From: Octopus sinensis
Taxonomy: Eukaryota
DNA: 7,448 nucleotides
Reading direction: 5' to 3'
Assembly (NCBI RefSeq): GCF_006345805.1
Contig: NW_021828875.1
Span: 1-7,448, forward strand
Shown here: positions 1 through 7,448 of the stretch, piece by piece
Layout: every line of letters starts with the position of its first letter
How positions within the stretch are numbered: position 1 is the stretch's first letter
Position numbers and translations under genes: made by a program
Notes under the pieces: model-generated
Database searches by the model: none
Told to the model about the DNA's origin: nothing
The model's input: the letters and a program-made list of their open reading frames with translations, nothing else

Positions 1-3
1 TGA

Positions 4-797
4 GTGGAGGGGTTAGTCCATGAGGTCACATTCAGGGTGACTTGGGAACTGGTGGCCACACAGGAAATGAGAATTGATTGGAATGATGTGCTCAAGGATT
101 AGACAATGATCATATCATTACCGACGGACATAAGTTGGCCGCACTATTTTCATTGGCCTGCAATGATTTAAATATGTCACGAGCTGGACCCGTTACCGAG
201 CCGGACGCGTTAAAATTCAACTTTAATTTCTCAGGTGATTTTGTCAATAAAAATTTATAAATTGACAAAATACCGACAAGTACAAGACAGTTTTATTTCC
301 CAACAAACCCATAAATTAATGTTAGGAAAAAGCCAAGAGCAGAAAAAGAGGCTAATAATGTGGTTTGATTTCATTGTATAGGGTCATTTTATGAGACACA
401 ACATGTCTCTTCTTAGCATATACCCAAATTAGAGATTGAAACGAGAAATAGCAATGAGATCTGTCAAATTATTACCCCCCTCACAACCTAAACCAAATTA
501 GCGTTCAGTATTCATTGATTTTACTTTTTCTATTAAGGTCTACTTATAAATTATTTTAAGGGATTCAATGGAAAACTTAAGTTATTTCAATTTTAATTTT
601 GAATCATGTTAAAATTTTAAATCTTTTAATAAAGAGATATCTTTGATCTGATTCCACACTCCTCCCGAGTGCTTTTAATCGAGAAAATAAACGTTCCCTT
701 CTTGGACTCGACCAAACGACATCTCATTTGGTGGTCCCCTGAGATGTTACGATTAGGACTTGCACTGAATGTGTTGCCTGTCTTATTCGCATGTCGA
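4..797 (+). CDS. Probable upstream exon fragments of an unidentified spliced gene (frameshifted, boundaries uncertain)
   Basis: Protein-like open stretches: 4-99 (VEGLVHEVTFRVTWELVATQEMRIDWNDVLKD), a shifted frame ~102-257 (DNDHIITDGHKLAALFSLACNDLNMSRAGPVTEPDALKFNF...) and 633-797 (RDIFDLIPHSSRVLLIEKINVPFLDSTKRHLIWWSPEMLRLGLAL...). Candidate 22-23 nt GT-AG introns lie at 360-381 and 538-560. No continuous frame was proven and no family motif recognised. Confidence 0.3.
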
Positions 798-1037
798 TAG
801 CTCAGGAAATGCGTTGCAGGGAAATATAATCAAGTTGTTCAATCCCCGATGGAGTTGTGTTCATAGCAATTGTAAATTGCGGGCACAGTTGTGATTGCGT
901 AACTTTATTGCAGGGGATGGGCGCAATCCTCTCAAAATGAGTCTCGTATGCTCACTAATTAGGTTTTTTCCCAAAACAAGGATATATGGTCATTTTCCGT
1001 TTTGCTGTGTAGGTTTGTCAGAGTATTATTATTTTAG

Positions 1038-1792
1038 TTGGACGTCGATGTCGTGCATGCAATAAAGAAGGCGTTGGAGATGATTTGGCCATCCACTAGG
1101 GATTATTTTGAGGCAATGTACAGAATGACTGCAATGTCGAGGTAGTTCTCGATTTTACACGTAGAAATTACACGACATTCGTTTTTCGACGAATTATTCT
1201 CTTCAGTACTACTACAACCGCTATTGTTGCGCATGACAAACATTGGACGCTCGACGGGTGGTTGATGGGCAACGTGGAGAATACGGGAATGGTGATTTAT
1301 TTTTCTCATTCCAGGAATCATTAAGAAAATCATCACATGGTCTACTCCGTTTTCTCAAACAGAATGAAAAGGAAGATTACACGCTCATGATTGTGCACTC
1401 AGCACTCCGAATCACCAACACTCCACAACTCTCCAAACTAAGGGCTCATATTAGCGTCCTCTTCTTCTCAGTCGTGTTGTTATAAATAGTTTTAGAATAA
1501 AAAGAATTCATCTACCGCCGAAGGGCAGCCCGGAAGCTGACGCGTCTTCCCGAATGTGGTTGCCCTATCTGCTAATGATGACGACCGTTCAACAGCGTAC
1601 GACACATTGCTGAGGGCAATCAAGACTGGTTACATTACCCTTGACCACTTTATTCCTTATTTCACCAAAGTGTGTTCTTCAAGAGAAATTCAGAATACGG
1701 TTGAAGCGTGTTGTGCTATTTCAGTCTCACTACAATCTGTAATGTCCACAAACAACCAAAGAAGAACTATACAGCCTCCACACCTTCACGTT
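1038..1792 (+). CDS. Spliced coding segment of an unidentified protein (best-supported part)
   Basis: Removing GT-AG introns 1142-1164, 1292-1314 and 1471-1495 joins four pieces into one frame: LDVDVVHAIKKALEMIWPSTRDYFEAMYRMTAMSR-NYTTFVFRRIILFSTTTTAIVAHDKHWTLDGWLMGNVENTGM-ESLRKSSHGLLRFLKQNEKEDYTLMIVHSALRITNTPQLSKLRAHISVLFFS-NKKNSSTAEGQPGS*RVFPNVVALSANDDDRSTAYDTLLRAIKTGYITLDHFIPYFTK... One internal TGA sits at 1538-1540. This accounts for the 3' part of ORF 1243-1485 and for ORF 1556-1795. Confidence 0.6.
1142..1164 (+). other. 23-nt spliceosomal micro-intron
   Basis: gtagttctcgattttacacgtag. Removal (AG|A = Arg) avoids an in-frame TAG and joins two long open stretches. Confidence 0.65.
1292..1314 (+). 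other. 23-nt spliceosomal micro-intron
   Basis: gtgatttatttttctcattccag, pyrimidine-rich and phase 0. Removal switches into the ESLRKSSHG frame of ORF 1243-1485. Confidence 0.7.
1471..1495 (+). other. 25-nt spliceosomal micro-intron
   Basis: gtcgtgttgttataaatagttttag, phase 0. It contains the TAA ending ORF 1243-1485, and removal leads into the frame of ORF 1556-1795. Confidence 0.5.
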
Positions 1793-2726
1793 TAGCGTGA
1801 TTGAGAACCTGACTGTTACTCTGTGGCAATGTACACATACAAAACTATACACGTATTGTGTTACATTTAAATTGCAGTCCAGATGCGTGGTCTTTCTTAT
1901 GCAGAGAAGGGGACTCGATTGCCTTATCCTCGAGGGGAGAGAAAAGGTTTAATTCAGTGGCGCAATGAACATCTTCTAAATTCTATAAGGTTTTTATTCT
2001 TGCTATTTCAGAATGTGGGATTCCTGTGCGAAGGAGTATATTAGTTTATGGATTATTACTCTCTAATATTGGAAAGGACCCTTTCATTGGACGAACACTC
2101 CGGACATATGTCCCTATAACATTCGGAGAACCACTTGATGCTCGATCATATGGCATATTCAAGATTTTGTGATTGTGCTTGAACAAGTCATTAACGAGAT
2201 TAAACAAGGACAACATGGTTAAATGGTTGTGTCCCACGTCACAGTGCAGGTCATCAGATGGTCGGACATCGAAGAATGACGAAGAACTTGTGTAAATCTT
2301 TACACAAGTTTTGCTAAAAAAACTGCTGCGAATTGAAAGCAGATACACCCTTATTGCGTGTCCTTGCACTTGATCACGAATCTGGGACCTCCGATCTTTA
2401 CGACATGGTCCTCTTACAAACACTCCAGACTAGAATGTATGTTCGATGTCGTTCATTATTATAGTTTGATGGTTAAAGTTCGGGAGGGGACGTCTCTCCA
2501 CATTCTGAGTATAATGGGCATTGGTTGGATGTCTTACTATTGCCATCGACCGAGGAATTCCCTCTCACTGTTCTACTTCCACTACAATTTAGAACTATAA
2601 TCCGTATCACATGACTCAGATACTCTATTTCTTCCAGCTGGCGTCGTGTTGAATGCTCACGTGCTTTTTATAATCGAATTCTGAAATGTTCAAAATATTC
2701 AGAAATTGTATTGTGAGGAGTATTCA
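1742..2726 (+). CDS. Continuation of the spliced gene (copy A), with small indels
   Basis: Frame CPQTTKEELYSLHTFTFSVIENLTVTLWQCTHTKLYT | intron 1853-1877 | PDAWSFLCREGDSIALSSRGEKRFNSV.. | intron 1990-2011 | (R)MWDSCAKEYIS.. An A/B consensus then gives ..DYYSLILERTPFIGRTLPDICPYNIRMNHLMLDHMAY..QDFVIVLEQVIN.. and ..ADTPLLRVLALDHESGTHSDLYDMVLLQTLQTR. Several single-base corrections taken from copy B are required. Confidence 0.5.
1853..1877 (+). other. 25-nt spliceosomal micro-intron (identical copy at 3719-3743)
   Basis: gtattgtgttacatttaaattgcag. Phase 2 removal joins KLYT to PDAWSF in copy A. Confidence 0.6.
1990..2011 (+). other. 22-nt (probably 23-nt) spliceosomal micro-intron
   Basis: gtttttattcttgctatttcag. 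Removal gives ATA AG|A ATG TGG (I-R-M-W). Copy B has the homologous sequence from 3853, lacking the terminal AG. Confidence 0.6.
2218..2244 (+). other. 27-nt candidate micro-intron
   Basis: gttaaatggttgtgtcccacgtcacag. It contains the TAA that ends the QDFVIVLEQVIN frame, and the donor is phase 1 in both copies. Confidence 0.4.
2437..2464 (+). other. 28-nt micro-intron; its TAG acceptor contains the Tc1 target TA in copy B
   Basis: gtatgttcgatgtcgttcattattatag, with a strong GTATGT donor and a T-rich TAG acceptor. Confidence 0.55.
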
Positions 2727-2798
2727 GTGTAGGTCTTTGCAATGCAAATCCTTATGTGCTGGGAATAATGAATTGATTATGTTACTGCATGTGCAGGG

Positions 2799-3715
2799 AA
2801 GATGTTACGAGACATTCTCAAGTCTTTTTTCTGGCAGCCGGGGGTTGTTGTGTGTGAGTTAGTGAATAGGAGGCAAGGTTGAAAGGATTGTCATGTCACA
2901 AACAATTCCAAGTAGTTTGCAGCAAAGATGACTAATGTTCTGCAAAACACTTTAGGCCAGTTCTACAACCTTGACGTAACCTGTTGTGGTTTATTGTAGT
3001 CGGAATCTATTCTTTCCAAATGTAATGAAATTGGTTTTCAAAATGGACTCTATTTATCGATACTATTCGATTTACTATGAGAATTACTTGGAACACTACA
3101 ATTTTCTGCGTTTGGTAATTCCAGCGGAGATGTACAATTACTACCAGTCATACCGCCCATCCCAACTCCTCAAGTAGCCAACAAAACGGAGGCACAACGA
3201 CGAAAGATCGTGGAGTTTTTGATGGAAATAAACGACAAGATTTAATGCAAGGAAATTATCAAGGACATGTCTGGATAGAATGATCAGTGATTAGATAAAG
3301 TACAACTCAATAACAGAGGACAAGTCCTTCTCTCGTCAGACTTGTAATTGTTAGTTTCACCCTAAGACCATTCACGTCTTTTTCCAGTATTCAGTGGACA
3401 GTTCTTTAAAGGAAGACAGTTCGAGTCAAACTATATTTCTGACTTTATGCTCTACTTTTTCCGTATTTGTACCACGAGACTCCCTCCACAACATCTGTTC
3501 AACAAAACTTCCTCATGTATTTGCAGGGTTGTAGAGTTCTAGTTATGTGTGGGCCGAGGATGTCTCTATTCGACGTAATTTGGAGGCCAATTGTTTATAG
3601 TCACATACATTGTTCCTGTCACGGAATTTGACGACTTTATGTCCCAGGTGTGTCTGTTTTTATTTTAGTCACTATCGTAAGGGAGCCGGATTAATACTTG
3701 TTTTTCATAGCAGTT
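2799..3715 (+). CDS. Further probable exon fragments of the same gene
   Basis: Protein-like stretches: KMLRDILKSFFWQPGVVVCELVNRRQG (2799-2879), SESILSKCNEIGFQNGLYLSILFDLL*ELLGTLQFSAFGNSSGDVQLLPVIPPIPTPQVANKTEAQRRKIVEFLMEINDKI (3000-3242, following a TAG acceptor) and VFSGQFFKGRQFESNYISDFMLYFFRICTTRLPPQHLFNKTSS (~3390-3515). Candidate 21-nt intron at 3648-3668. The joins were not resolved. Confidence 0.35.
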
Positions 3716-3918
3716 CACGTATTGTGTTACATTTAAATTGCAGTCCAGATGCGCGGTCTCTCTTATGCAGAAGGTGGACTCGATTGCTCATCCCTCGAGG
3801 AGAAAAGGTTTAATTCAGTGGTCGCAATGAACTATCTTCTAAATTCTATAAGGTTTTCCATTCTTGCTATTTCAATGTGGGATTCCTGTGCGAAGGAGTA
3901 TATTAGTTTTATGGATTA
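3716..3918 (+). pseudogene. Duplication copy B, left part (ends at the Helitron-like insertion)
   Basis: Homology to 1850 starts abruptly at CACGTATTGTG and ends at ATGGATTA. It contains most of ORF 3749-3949, whose last residues (RQLASLTAT) come from the inserted element. Confidence 0.9.
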
Positions 3919-4211
3919 TCGGCAGCTCGCTTCGCTCACCGCGACCTAGCTCCTGCGGAGGGCCTGGTTCATCAAACAACTATAAGTTATGTAGATGTAT
4001 AAAACTACTGGTTTAATGTAACCCTATTCTATCGCCTGTTGATAAACGATGTTTGTCGTCCGTCCTTCCTTGGCATATATGAATAAATTTTCTCTTCTGC
4101 CTACCTCGAGCATCCCCATACAGCTGTCCATGTGAAAAGCACTCACTCTCTAAAAATAACCCCAACTACCTTTAATGACTGTCCCTGGGCCTTGTTATTG
4201 TCATTGCAAAC

Positions 4212-4312
4212 TTTTTTTTTCATTTTTTGTGGTTTATTTTTTTTTATATTAATTTTTTTTCATTTTTTCCTTTGTAATTTCCTTTTTTTCTTTTTTTATT
4301 TTTTTGTTTTTT
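4212..4312 (+). repeat. T-rich low-complexity tract
   Basis: About 100 nt of interrupted poly-T runs. It produces the spurious Phe-rich ORF 4132-4404. Confidence 0.9.
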
Positions 4313-4599
4313 ACTGGCGGAAATGGGGCAGGGGGAGATGCGGCAGGCGGAAATTCGCAGGCAAGAAAGCGACACACAAAAAGCAACACACAAAAAAGAT
4401 TTAATTAATTACCTTATTAAGCTGACCGTTTTTTTCTTCAGCTTCGTTTTTCCTCCTTCGGTTATCTATTTAAAAAATTATTTTTGAATAATAAAAAAGT
4501 TTAGGAAAAGAGGAAAGAGGCATACCGAAAATAAATTCTATCTTTACGAAAAACTCAAGTAAATAGTTAATATTTTTACGCAAATTCTTTGATTGCGCT

Positions 4600-4802
4600 G
4601 TCAATTGGTGGTAAATTGTGTTAATGGTTGTGCTAATGTGGTTTCAACTATCAAAGTGTTTTTCAAAATCTGTTAATTGCACACTCTATTCAAGGTCGTG
4701 CGTCAATTGTGGTAAATTGTGTTAATGATTGTGCTAATGTGGTTTCAACTATCAAAGTGGTTTTCAAAATCTGTTAATTGCACACTCTATTCAAAGTCGT
4801 GC
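4600..4802. repeat. Tandem dimer of a 102/101-bp unit
   Basis: gtcaatt(g)gtggtaaattgtgttaat...tcaa(g/a)gtcgtgc at 4600-4701 and 4702-4802, differing by about three substitutions and one indel. Confidence 0.95.
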
Positions 4803-5010
4803 AATCTGTGATTGCACATTCTGTCAAAGTCAAATATGATAATAGCTTTAATTTTGATTCATGGTCGATAATGATATATGCATTTATTTTAAAGAGAAAA
4901 ACATAGGATGAATTGAATTTCTTTATCGCGAATAATTGGGAGTTCATCATTGTAATATTCTCGCTGTCGTTTTCATCAAGGATATTCTTAATACGTGAGA
5001 TTTTTGCCTT

Positions 5011-6179
5011 GAAGGTTTTAATGGACCTCATCATGAATGTCGAGGACATTCGCGTTGTTAATTTTAATCAAAATGCAGAAAATAATTTTTTGATTTTTTG
5101 GGGGAAGGTTTTAAGGACTTCATCATGTAAGTCGAGGACATTGTAGTTGTTCATTTTAACCAAAATGCAGAAAATTTTTTTAATTTTTTGGGGGGGGAGG
5201 TTTTAAGGACTTCATCATGTAAGTGAGGACATTGTAGTTGTTCATTTTAACCAAAATGGCAGAAAATTTTTTTTTAATTTTTTGGGGGGGAAGGTTTTAA
5301 GGACTTCATCATGTAAGTCGAGGACATTGTAGTTGTTCATTTTAACCAAAATGCAGAAAATTTTTTTTAATTTTTTTTGGGGGAAGGTTTTAAGGACTTC
5401 ATCATGTAAGTCGAGGACATTGTAGTTGTCATTTTAACCAAAATGCAGAAAATTTTTTTTAATTTTTTTTGGGGGGAAGGTTTTAAGGACTTCATCATGT
5501 AAGTCGAGGACATTGTAGTTGTTCATTTTAACCAAAATGCAGAAAATTTTTTTTTAATTTTTTGGGGGGGAAGGTTTTAAGGACTTCATCATGTAAGTCT
5601 AGGACATTGTAGTTGTTCATTTTAACCAAAATGCAGAAAATTTTTTTTTAATTTTTTTTGGCGAAAGGTTTTAAGGACCTCATCATGTAAGTCGAGGACA
5701 TTGTAGTTGTTCATTTTAACCAAAATGCAGAAAATTTTTTTTTTAATTTTTTTTGGGGGGGAAGGTTTTAAGGACTTCATCATGTAAGTCGAGGACATGT
5801 AGCTGTTCATTTTAACCAAATGCAGAAAATTTTTTTTAAATTTTTTTGGGGGGAAGGTTTTAAGGACTTCATCATGTAAGTCGAGGACATTGTAGTTGTT
5901 CATTTTAACCAAAATGCAGAAAATTGTTTTTTTAATTTTTTTGGGGGGGAAGGTTTTTAAGGACCTCATCATGTAAGTCGAGGACATTGTAGTTGTTCAT
6001 TTTAACCAAAATGCAGAAAATTTTTTTTAATTTTTTTTGGGGGGAAGGTTTAAGAGTAAGGACTTCATCATGTTAGTCGAGGACACTTGTAGTTGTTCAT
6101 TTTAACCAAATGCAGAACAATTTTTTTTAATTTTTTTGGGGGGAAGGTTTTAAGGACCTCATCATGTAAGTCGAGACAT
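5011..6179. repeat. Tandem array (minisatellite/satellite-like), ~94-bp unit, 12 full copies plus a partial 13th
   Basis: Unit gaaggttttaaggac(t/c)tcatcatgtaagtcgaggacattgtagttgttcattttaaccaaaatgcagaaaa(T)n aa(T)n(G)n. Starts at about 5011, 5104, 5197, 5290, 5383, 5476, 5570, 5663, 5761, 5853, 5949, 6044 and 6143. Length variation is mostly in homopolymers, and the first unit is the most diverged. Confidence 0.97.
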
Positions 6180-6211
6180 CGTATTGCCAATTTGAAGTTG
6201 GTGTGCACACA

Positions 6212-6238
6212 ACAGACAGACAGACAGACAGACAGACA
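6212..6238. repeat. (ACAG)n / (CTGT)n microsatellite, 6 units plus ACA
   Basis: acagacagacagacagacagacagaca, 27 nt from the right boundary of the inserted element. Confidence 0.97.
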
Positions 6239-6265
6239 CACAACCATACCATTTTATTATTAAGA

Positions 6266-6712
6266 TTACTCTCTAATATTGGAAAGGACCCCTTTCATTG
6301 GACGAACACTCCCGGACATATGTCCCTATAACATTCGGATGAACATTCGGATGAACATTCGGATGAACCACTTGATGCTCGATCATATGGCATATCTCAA
6401 GATTTTGTGATTGTGCTTGAACAAGTCATTAACGACGAGATTAACAAGGACAACATTGGTTAAATGGTTGTGTTCCACGTCACAGTGCAGGTCATCAAGA
6501 TGGTCGGACACGAAGAATGACGAAGAACTTGTGTAAATTCTTTACACAAGTTTTTGCTTAAAAAACTGCTGCGAATTGAAAAGCAGATACACCCTTATTG
6601 CGTGTCCTTGCACTTGATCACGAATCTGGGACCCACTCCGATCTTTACGACATGGTCCTCTTACAAACACTCCAGACTAGAATTGTATGTTCGAATGTCG
6701 TTCATTATTATA
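6266..6712 (+). pseudogene. Duplication copy B, right part (between the Helitron-like element and Tc1)
   Basis: Aligns to 2056-2463 and ends exactly at the TA preceding the Tc1 terminus. It accounts for most of ORFs 6554-6760 and 6598-6783. Confidence 0.92.
6330..6365 (+). repeat. Perfect triplication of 12-nt AACATTCGGATG
   Basis: Three exact copies here versus one (AACATTCGGA-G) at 2118-2128 in copy A. Confidence 0.95.
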
Positions 6713-6717
6713 CAGTA

Positions 6718-6922
6718 CCGGTCATATGTTTTAGACATTCTGAAAAAACCCAGTGTTTGATTTTTCTAAAGAAAATCCAATAAAATAAAAGTTTTTTAGT
6801 AATATTATCTATATTATTTATATTATTTATCATTTTCATATCTTATCTTCGCTTTATCTTCGACTTCTTCATTATGTTTAAGGATTTTGTCGAAATTGGC
6901 CCAGTCATATGTTTTAGACATT
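6718..6922 (+). repeat. Outer and inner direct repeats of an IR/DR-type Tc1 left end
   Basis: CC(G/A)GTCATATGTTTTAGACATT at 6718-6739 and 6901-6922 (21/22 identical, 183 bp apart). The outer copy lies 5 nt inside the terminus. Confidence 0.8.
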
Positions 6923-7012
6923 TTATTTAAATTCTTATATTTCAATAAAATTTATACTTTTTTTCTATTTTTTTCGTATCGGAAACGTGTTTTAAATTAA
7001 TTTGAAAGCAGT

Positions 7013-7448
7013 ATGCCACGACTTTCTGTTGAAACAGCGTCATAGAATTGTTTTTATGCGAGAAAATGGTCATACCGTACAGGAAATATCGATTTTACTT
7101 GGAATATCCAGATGCGCCGTAAATCACACTTACCAACGGTATTTGGATGGAAAGGGGTTTTACGACAGACCAAAATCTGGAAGAAATTGTATTCTTTCGG
7201 CACGTCGGCAGCTCAAAGGAATCTTGTACGTGAGTCTCGACGTTTTCCCAAAAAACAGCGAATGAAATCAGAAAAGACCTAAATATTACGGAAACCGTCA
7301 GTGTCGAAACTGTACGAAGATCTTACGCAAAAATGAACTTTTCGTAAGAATAGCAGCCAAAAAACTAGACTTTCAACTAATAATATCAAGAAGAGAAAAA
7401 TATTCTGCACTAGAAACATTTCATTCGATTGGAATAAGGTCATTTTTA
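7013..7448 (+). pseudogene. Tc1-like transposase, N-terminal DNA-binding region up to the start of the DDE domain; frameshifted as sequenced
   Basis: With about five 1-nt corrections: MPRLSVE(T)RHRIVFMRENGHTVQEISILLGISRCAVNHTYQRYLDGKGFYDRPKSGRNCILSARRQLK..LVRESRRFPK(K)TANEIRKDLNITETVSVETVRR(I)LRKNELFVRIAAKK(P)RLSTNNIKKRKIFCTRNISFDWNKVIF. It shows an HTH-like N-terminus, the GRPR-like linker (RPKSGR), VS..TVRR, KKP.LS and W.KVIF, which in Tc1 precedes (S)DE. Confidence 0.92.

Follow-up and report, generated by a model that had tools for sequence, protein, structure and literature searches.

Micro-introns have been known in dicyemids since 2010 (Ogino et al. 2010; PMC6543705, PMC6736024, PMC13644364); the median dicyemid intron measures 27 nucleotides (nt), with about 5-6 introns per gene and a mean exon of 198 nt (PMC6736024, PMC6543705). 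The genome of Dicyema japonicum, collected from the renal sacs of Octopus sinensis, has a guanine plus cytosine (GC) content of 36.7% and consists for 49% of repeats; its assembly drew in part on PacBio RS II reads (PMC6736024, PMC6543705). Among animals, micro-introns of this size are found only in dicyemids and myxobolid myxozoans (PMC13644364). Here we describe a stretch of 7,448 nt filed under Octopus sinensis (contig NW_021828875.1 of assembly GCF_006345805.1, positions 1 to 7,448, hereafter the window), which is eukaryote-like, with an overall GC content of 36.8%, and in which a preliminary description had placed one large gene at 890-3745, packed with micro-introns.

That single large gene is not supported, as coding signal within 890-3745 is confined to 1038-1792 and the sequence from 1850 on is a tandem duplicate whose statistics are non-coding-like. 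The reading that we prefer, with a probability of roughly 45%, is that the window is part of a dicyemid-type genome in which 1038-1792 would be a small lineage-specific gene, or a decayed one, and 1850-3745 would be duplicated non-coding DNA. The micro-intron phenomenon is already known, and the locus would at most be a new, unverified member of it.

Structure and possible coding character of 1038-1792

The candidate gene is made up of the following features:

1038..1141, + strand, candidate exon 1, in whose frame, open from 1038, ATG first occurs at 1080
1142..1164, + strand, candidate micro-intron 1 of 23 nt (GTAGTTCTCGATTTTACACGTAG), leading from frame 0 to frame 2
1165..1291, + strand, candidate exon 2, in which codon usage favours frame 2 (+6.4 bits over 1216-1305)
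1292..1314, + strand, candidate micro-intron 2 of 23 nt (GTGATTTATTTTTCTCATTCCAG), with codon preference passing from frame 2 before it to frame 1 after it
1315..1470, + strand, candidate exon 3, in which frame 1 is favoured (+8.1 bits over 1351-1440)
1471..1495, + strand, candidate micro-intron 3 of 25 nt (GTCGTGTTGTTATAAATAGTTTTAG)
1496..1540, + strand, candidate exon 4, ending at the in-frame TGA 1538-1540
1541..1792, + strand, 84-codon open stretch after the TGA in the frame of exon 4, closing at TAG 1793-1795

All three candidate introns have the form of dicyemid-type micro-introns (GT...AG, about 20-30 nt). When they are removed, 1038-1792 becomes a frame of 228 codons with a single in-frame TGA (1538-1540), which bears out the earlier description of four fragments joined into about 200 codons with one internal stop. 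In the minimal model, from ATG 1080 to TGA 1540, the frame is intact and encodes 129 amino acids. The stretch 1541-1792, in which codon preference for the model frame is weak, can be counted with the gene only if the TGA has arisen by error or by recent mutation. If intron 3 is left in place, the frame of exon 3 ends at TAA 1483-1485, with an AATAAA 11 nt on, at 1496; this suggests an alternative gene end, and the corresponding two-intron model encodes 119 amino acids. A similar pairing of a stop codon with AATAAA, as at 1483-1501, is seen at 246-260.

Codon usage was scored with a table trained on 709 codons from three homology-validated genes of VCDQ01006019.1, a contig described in the next section. 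Under this table, held-out true genes score +0.01 to +0.06 bits/codon in their own frame and -0.08 to -0.22 in the others. The table is a weak discriminator on short pieces, some satellite-derived open reading frames (ORFs) also scoring positive. The spliced 1038-1792 scores -0.037 bits/codon in frame, and -0.23 and -0.12 in the other two frames. It thereby falls between the held-out genes and pseudo-coding sequences (pseudo-CDS) obtained by the same splicing search on shuffled sequence (-0.129±0.044 bits/codon), 2.2% of which score as high or higher. The model frame is the best of the three in 4/4 candidate exons. In a sliding frame plot that is blind to stop codons, the favoured frame is 0 (start mod 3 = 0, matching the frame of candidate exon 1) over 1036-1125, 2 over 1171-1350, 1 over 1306-1440 and for the most part 2 over 1441-1710; this order (0→2→1→2) agrees with the prediction from the three introns.

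The amino-acid composition of the spliced product has a log-odds of -0.025 per residue, compared to -0.104±0.034 for pseudo-CDS, with 1/93 shuffles as high (a Src kinase used as control reaches +0.069). Period-3 power rises from 1.89 to 2.93 upon splicing, a value reached by random removals of the same length in 6.8% of trials; in the kinase control it rises from 1.45 to 4.73. By this measure, no other non-satellite part of the window is as periodic as 701-1750. All intrinsic signals, individually weak and in part correlated, agree in direction and indicate some coding character in 1038-1792. Whether this amounts to a genuine unannotated, lineage-specific dicyemid gene of about 130-215 amino acids with three introns of 23-25 nt is somewhat doubtful, and we put that part of the reading forward tentatively.

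Source genome, tandem duplication and sequence quality

The attribution of the window follows from a Tc1-family transposon at its right-hand end. A protein search with this element returned one relative, annotated as 'tyrosine-protein kinase fyna-like [Octopus sinensis]' and encoded on the 670-kilobase (kb) contig VCDQ01006019.1 of GCA_006345805.1, which is filed as Octopus sinensis. Positions 6712-7448 of the window align with positions 9699-10432 of that contig over 745 columns with 1 mismatch and 14 insertion or deletion (indel) events; a tblastx comparison of the window with this locus gave nothing beyond the Tc1.

The contig is gene-dense at 7453-15540 and contains compact metazoan genes (an NDR-like kinase, a Src-like kinase and a caspase) with at least five GT-AG micro-introns of 24-31 nt, the positions of which are fixed by conserved kinase or caspase motifs. 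The Src-like kinase has a 27-nt intron (GTTCACATGTTAATAATGTGTGATTAG) between ..LGRMAGQ and IASGMSYL.. and a 31-nt intron ahead of ..SCVIVLDTKFPVKW; the NDR-like kinase is interrupted by a 26-nt intron between ..DNLLLDSR and GHIKIADFGLC; and the caspase has introns of 24 and 26 nt, the latter between ..ASIPG and YVSVRD.ERGSWF. The NCBI model of the kinase joins the helix-turn-helix (HTH) exon of the Tc1 to the kinase, and uses a 36-nt GC-AG intron, although the conserved MAGQIASGMSYL motif is recovered if a GT-AG intron of 27 nt is taken there instead.

The earlier proposal of a host genome with miniaturised introns is supported by these validated introns on a contig that carries a near-identical Tc1. 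Metazoan Src kinases and caspases, introns of 24-31 nt and a place in an octopus assembly all point to a dicyemid, a parasite of the octopus kidney, as the most likely source of the window, and VCDQ01006019.1 looks like dicyemid DNA in an octopus assembly that has been annotated as octopus genes. Parasite DNA thus appears to be present in a public octopus assembly under octopus gene names, with distorted intron models, and annotation of this kind can mislead comparative work on cephalopods.

Downstream of the candidate gene, the window contains a tandem duplication:

1850..3715, copy 1 of the duplication, with a unit of 1866 nt (1.87 kb)
3716..3920, first part of copy 2, directly adjoining copy 1
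6263..6711, second part of copy 2, cut by the Tc1 insertion at a TA

The end of copy 2 lies beyond the window, owing to the Tc1 insertion at 6712. Besides two later insertions, copy 2 contains a 12-nt motif that has expanded to 3.2 copies (6330-6368). The duplication could alternatively be a false haplotype join in the assembly.

The two copies (1850-2463 compared with 3716-3920 plus 6263-6711) differ by 27 indel events and 6 mismatches. In near-identical copies of both kinds, Tc1 and tandem unit, the differences consist almost entirely of 1-nt indels, which is the signature of uncorrected long-read errors, not of divergence. The indel noise amounts to about 1-3%, so reading frames in the window are unreliable and a true ORF is expected to shift frame every 50-100 nt. 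At 6397-6460, ..EPLDARSYGISQDFVIVLEQVIN.. can be read from copy 2 without a change of frame, whereas the corresponding place in copy 1 (2139-2219) needs a frameshift; hence some of the frame breaks are 1-nt errors, and there are hints of a short coding remnant in the duplicated unit near 2139-2219 / 6397-6460.

Error of this kind could also account for the structure of 1038-1792. In this alternative, a real coding sequence at about 1040-1800 has been broken by long-read indels and the 'introns' are coding or artefactual. The preponderance of indels over mismatches in both pairs of copies, the expected spacing of frameshifts and the restoration by copy 2 of the frame that is broken in copy 1 at ..SYGISQDFVIV.. 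all fit this idea, as do the flanking open frames at junctions 1 and 2, which overlap across 1112-1142 and 1237-1321, respectively. Owing to these overlaps, a 1-nt indel error could explain junction 1, and likewise junction 2. At junction 3, however, the flanking open frames do not overlap and their stops need removal, so that a single indel cannot join them. Moreover, the preference for frame 2 persists to about 1300, which places the second switch inside a T-rich GT..AG 23-mer, and only three frame changes occur in 755 nt, each of them at a canonical GT-AG segment of 23-25 nt. We therefore consider it improbable that indels explain the whole structure.

The duplication also bears on the larger gene that had been proposed. 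All eleven GT..AG segments on which that proposal was built are present in the sequence with the lengths given for them; in addition to the three listed above, they are:

891-913 and 1013-1037, + strand, weaker upstream candidate introns with GT..AG
1853-1877 (25 nt), 1990-2011 (22 nt), 2218-2244 (27 nt), 2437-2464 (28 nt), 2604-2637 and 3648-3668, + strand, downstream candidate introns with GT..AG

All six downstream candidates fall within copy 1, and the one at 1853-1877 lies at the left edge of the duplicated unit and recurs at 3719-3743. The span 1850-3745 is simply copy 1 with the first 30 nt of copy 2. Neither the segments at 1853, 1990, 2218 and 2437, which had been described as restoring the frame, nor the weaker ones at 891, 1013, 2604 and 3648 yield a continuous frame: the full spliced model contains dozens of stops in every frame after 1795. 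The best spliced pseudo-CDS of 1850-3715 scores -0.168 bits/codon and its period-3 power is 1.1-1.4, both non-coding-like, and no continuous spliced frame with coding statistics was found in 1850-3745. This span is not a continuation of the candidate gene at 1038-1792. The tandem repeat of 1850-3715 and the indel noise had both been overlooked.

One large gene at about 890-3745 with 7-11 micro-introns is consequently very unlikely. It can draw on positive codon scores at 2139-2219, 2318-2461 and 3081-3242, and on the fact that the + strand can be read through from 167 to 4000 when any GT-AG segment of 18-40 nt may be removed, whereas the - strand then reaches only 536 nt. This read-through takes 35 'introns', which implies that long GT..AG chains arise easily; it is lost once removals are restricted to 20-32 nt, and frames as long are obtained from shuffled sequence. 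Many stops remain with the originally proposed junctions, the duplicated part is without a coding or period-3 signal, and no proposed intron bypasses TAG 1793.

The longest plain ORF in the window (125-127 codons, 2046-2429, - strand) lies inside the duplicated unit and is rich in serine and arginine. It has no family match, is interrupted both in copy 2 and in the consensus of the copies, and has a length that chance could roughly account for. A consensus built from the shorter variants of the two copies gained a 103-codon ORF on the + strand and broke the 127-codon one on the - strand; neither is convincing.

Chance, homology and the proposed interpretation

The length of the spliced frame was compared with chance in dinucleotide shuffles of 651-3750, allowing GT-AG removals of 20-32 nt and taking the best frame of the + strand. 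With at most three removals and at most one stop, the best frame measures 764 nt, compared to 665±137 nt in the shuffles, and 6/40 shuffles equal or exceed it; with unlimited removals, the values are 797 nt and 862±291 nt. For frame length, this is the outcome that the preliminary description itself had named as refuting it, and splice removal does not restore the frame better than chance removals do. A filter for T-rich introns ending in YAG picked out 31 segments of the + strand and 6 of the - strand, compared to 11.9±4.4 for shuffled sequence. This enrichment was discounted because the validated introns of VCDQ01006019.1 are often not T-rich, and the strand asymmetry because it is not seen in the true genes of that contig. 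In a boundary-specific control with T-rich 20-32-mers on the + strand, GT..AG ranks 7th of 256 pairs (z ~2).

Searches for relatives of the putative protein returned no match at E ≤ 1 among 5.8 billion protein clusters, nothing above noise in Pfam (spliced peptide, its variants and the six frames of 1-4000), and no relative that survived a profile test in the Protein Data Bank (PDB; three-frame and six-frame scans of 1-4000). An exact-sequence look-up of ten window ORFs found none on record, and a metagenome scan with a 24-mer from exon 3 gave no match. A 143-residue model computed by AlphaFold without an alignment has a predicted local distance difference test (pLDDT) score of 39, a value that does not justify a fold search. 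The statement that the protein matches no recognised family therefore holds. If real, the protein is an orphan, which is not unusual for dicyemids, for which 313 lineage-specific clusters have been reported (PMC6736024, PMC6543705).

The faint resemblances that did surface raise the idea of a highly diverged member of a known family, either the C-terminal solenoid of FANCI or a CRAL-TRIO/BCH domain. A phmmer search of the PDB matched residues 1158-1203 of mouse FANCI (E = 0.016), and Pfam gave FANCI_S4 at E = 0.04 and CRAL_TRIO_2 at E = 0.04-0.07; the FANCI match, which is at noise level, is located in 1541-1792. For FANCI, 81 relatives were collected, a profile was built from 15 diverse C-termini, and hhalign was run. 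The profile scored 4.2 bits (E = 0.26 among 351 fragments) without colinear hits, hhalign aligned a different region with a probability of 1.1%, the strongly conserved IPNLIFAIEQYEKFLI..SRDFRI block is missing from the window, and the FANCI-like residues are specific to mammals instead of family-wide. In Pfam, FANCI_S4 reaches 13.5 bits (cut-off 25.3) and CRAL_TRIO_2 13.9-14.7 bits (gathering score 23), the latter over 47/137 positions; it depends on the splice variant, being lost with an alternative intron 3, and its score was not raised by alternative splice or frameshift mosaics. All of these matches are below the curated cut-offs and occur about as often as expected for the number of queries run. 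FANCI identity was rejected as noise, and membership of either family is extremely improbable.

Several of these results weigh against a dicyemid gene at 1038-1792. Frame length by itself is no evidence for a gene, and the intrinsic signals are each weak (p ~0.01-0.07) and mutually non-independent. The 228-codon version carries an internal TGA, and, at an indel noise of about 1%, what look like introns at junctions 1 and 2 could be frameshifts of the assembly. The protein, Pfam and PDB searches were empty, the predicted structure has a low score, and with no homolog to align, the junctions receive no support from a conserved protein alignment. The validated introns of VCDQ01006019.1 are themselves too poor in signal to allow single introns to be called from sequence alone, and the dicyemid attribution rests on one shared transposon.

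In another alternative there is no gene at all: the interval 890-3745 would be non-coding DNA rich in repeats, and the frame a chain of GT..AG pairs and open stretches that occur by chance. Equally long spliced frames from shuffled sequence, the lack of a homolog, domain or confident fold, the tandem duplication, satellites and transposons that surround the interval, and the positive codon scores of some satellite ORFs are all as this alternative would predict. Two observations speak against it, namely that 1038-1792 ranks in the top 1-7% of matched nulls for codon usage, composition and period-3 power, and that the codon-preferred frame switches exactly at the three GT-AG segments. On balance we regard the absence of a gene as unlikely, although less so than the other alternatives discussed here.

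We propose the following for the preferred reading, a dicyemid-type stretch with a small or decayed gene. The window would derive from a dicyemid-type animal genome, represented by a long-read assembly with uncorrected 1-nt indels. The candidate at 1038-1792 would be a small protein gene specific to its lineage, or one that has decayed recently, with a minimal product of 129 amino acids (ATG 1080 to TGA 1540) and a longer one, reaching as far as TAG 1795, should the TGA be an error. We infer that it would be transcribed, spliced at these sites and translated, the ordinary U2 spliceosome removing up to three GT-AG introns of 23-25 nt, as it does genome-wide in dicyemids. The span 1850-3745 would have arisen by tandem duplication without coding signal, copy 2 being struck later by a 2.3-kb insertion and by the Tc1.

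If this is true, the gene at 1038-1792 would escape standard gene callers, in DNA that is perhaps filed as octopus. More generally, splice signals in such genomes are weak, so that chained GT..AG removals give long 'genes' by chance, and uncorrected long-read indels mimic frame-restoring introns; intron calls made from sequence alone need support from homology or RNA.

Other features of the window and comparison with known systems

The remaining features of the window are two mobile or inserted elements:

3921..6262, insertion of 2.34 kb that splits copy 2, at a TTA|TTA site without clear target duplication
6712..7448, + strand, 5' part of a Tc1-family transposon with a CAGT-starting terminal repeat and an HTH_23 domain; frame broken by indels

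The insertion begins with TCGGCAGC, in a GC-rich stretch, and contains a 101-nt repeat in two copies (4600-4802), a 94-nt satellite in 12.4 copies (5011-6183) and (ACAG)7.8 (6212-6242). It starts with TC; CTRR is absent from both of its ends, as is any significant hairpin (z = -0.55). Neither a Helitron nor a PIF1 domain was found by Pfam in the frames of 1-4000, the internal frames of 4001-6262 lying outside that scan. The preliminary description had mentioned both Tc1 and Helitron-like elements: the former is clearly present, as judged from its HTH_23 domain (Pfam, E = 1e-8) and CAGT end, while a check of one insertion revealed no Helitron hallmarks.

At the left-hand end, 87-260 is an open stretch of 57 codons with a protein-like composition (+0.087 per residue), closed by TAA 258-260 with an AATAAA at 246, and is followed by an AT-rich stretch of about 32% GC that extends to around 650. 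An upstream gene may have its 3' end here, with an intergenic spacer behind it. Rfam and tRNA scans gave only a sub-threshold match to sR4, an archaeal C/D small nucleolar RNA (1630-1683, - strand, 26.7 bits versus a gathering score of 50), which was taken as chance.

The transposon resembles Tc1/mariner elements in being inserted at a TA, in its terminal inverted repeats, which are of the CAGT type and measure about 200 nt, and in its N-terminal HTH_23 DNA-binding domain. It differs in that the copy is partial, only the 5' 737 nt being inside the window and the DDE domain beyond it, and in that its frame is broken by indels.

With respect to the introns, ciliates share the length class (about 25 nt in Paramecium, 15-16 nt in Stentor), but their stop codons are reassigned and they have neither Src-family tyrosine kinases nor caspases, whereas the genes of VCDQ01006019.1 are metazoan. 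Myxobolid myxozoans (Hadjez et al. 2026, PMC13644364) are likewise comparable, being parasitic animals with a compact genome, a median intron of 22-27 nt and minimal splice motifs; they differ as parasites of fish and annelids, and the GC content of H. salminicola is 29% (PMC13644364). The link to a contig of the octopus assembly favours a dicyemid over a myxozoan source. Published dicyemid introns have transcripts or conserved exon junctions behind them, and in this respect the three introns of the window differ as candidates called from sequence, as does the putative protein in having no ortholog in the collections searched. In other respects the window resembles the described dicyemid genomes: its candidate introns are GT-AG and 23-25 nt long between exons of about 100-300 nt, its GC content of 36.8% compares with a published value of about 36.7% in a genome with about 49% repeats, and the host is Octopus sinensis. 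Finally, dicyemid splice signals are reduced to GT(a)...AG (PMC13644364), and the same variable third base is seen both in the window and in VCDQ01006019.1.

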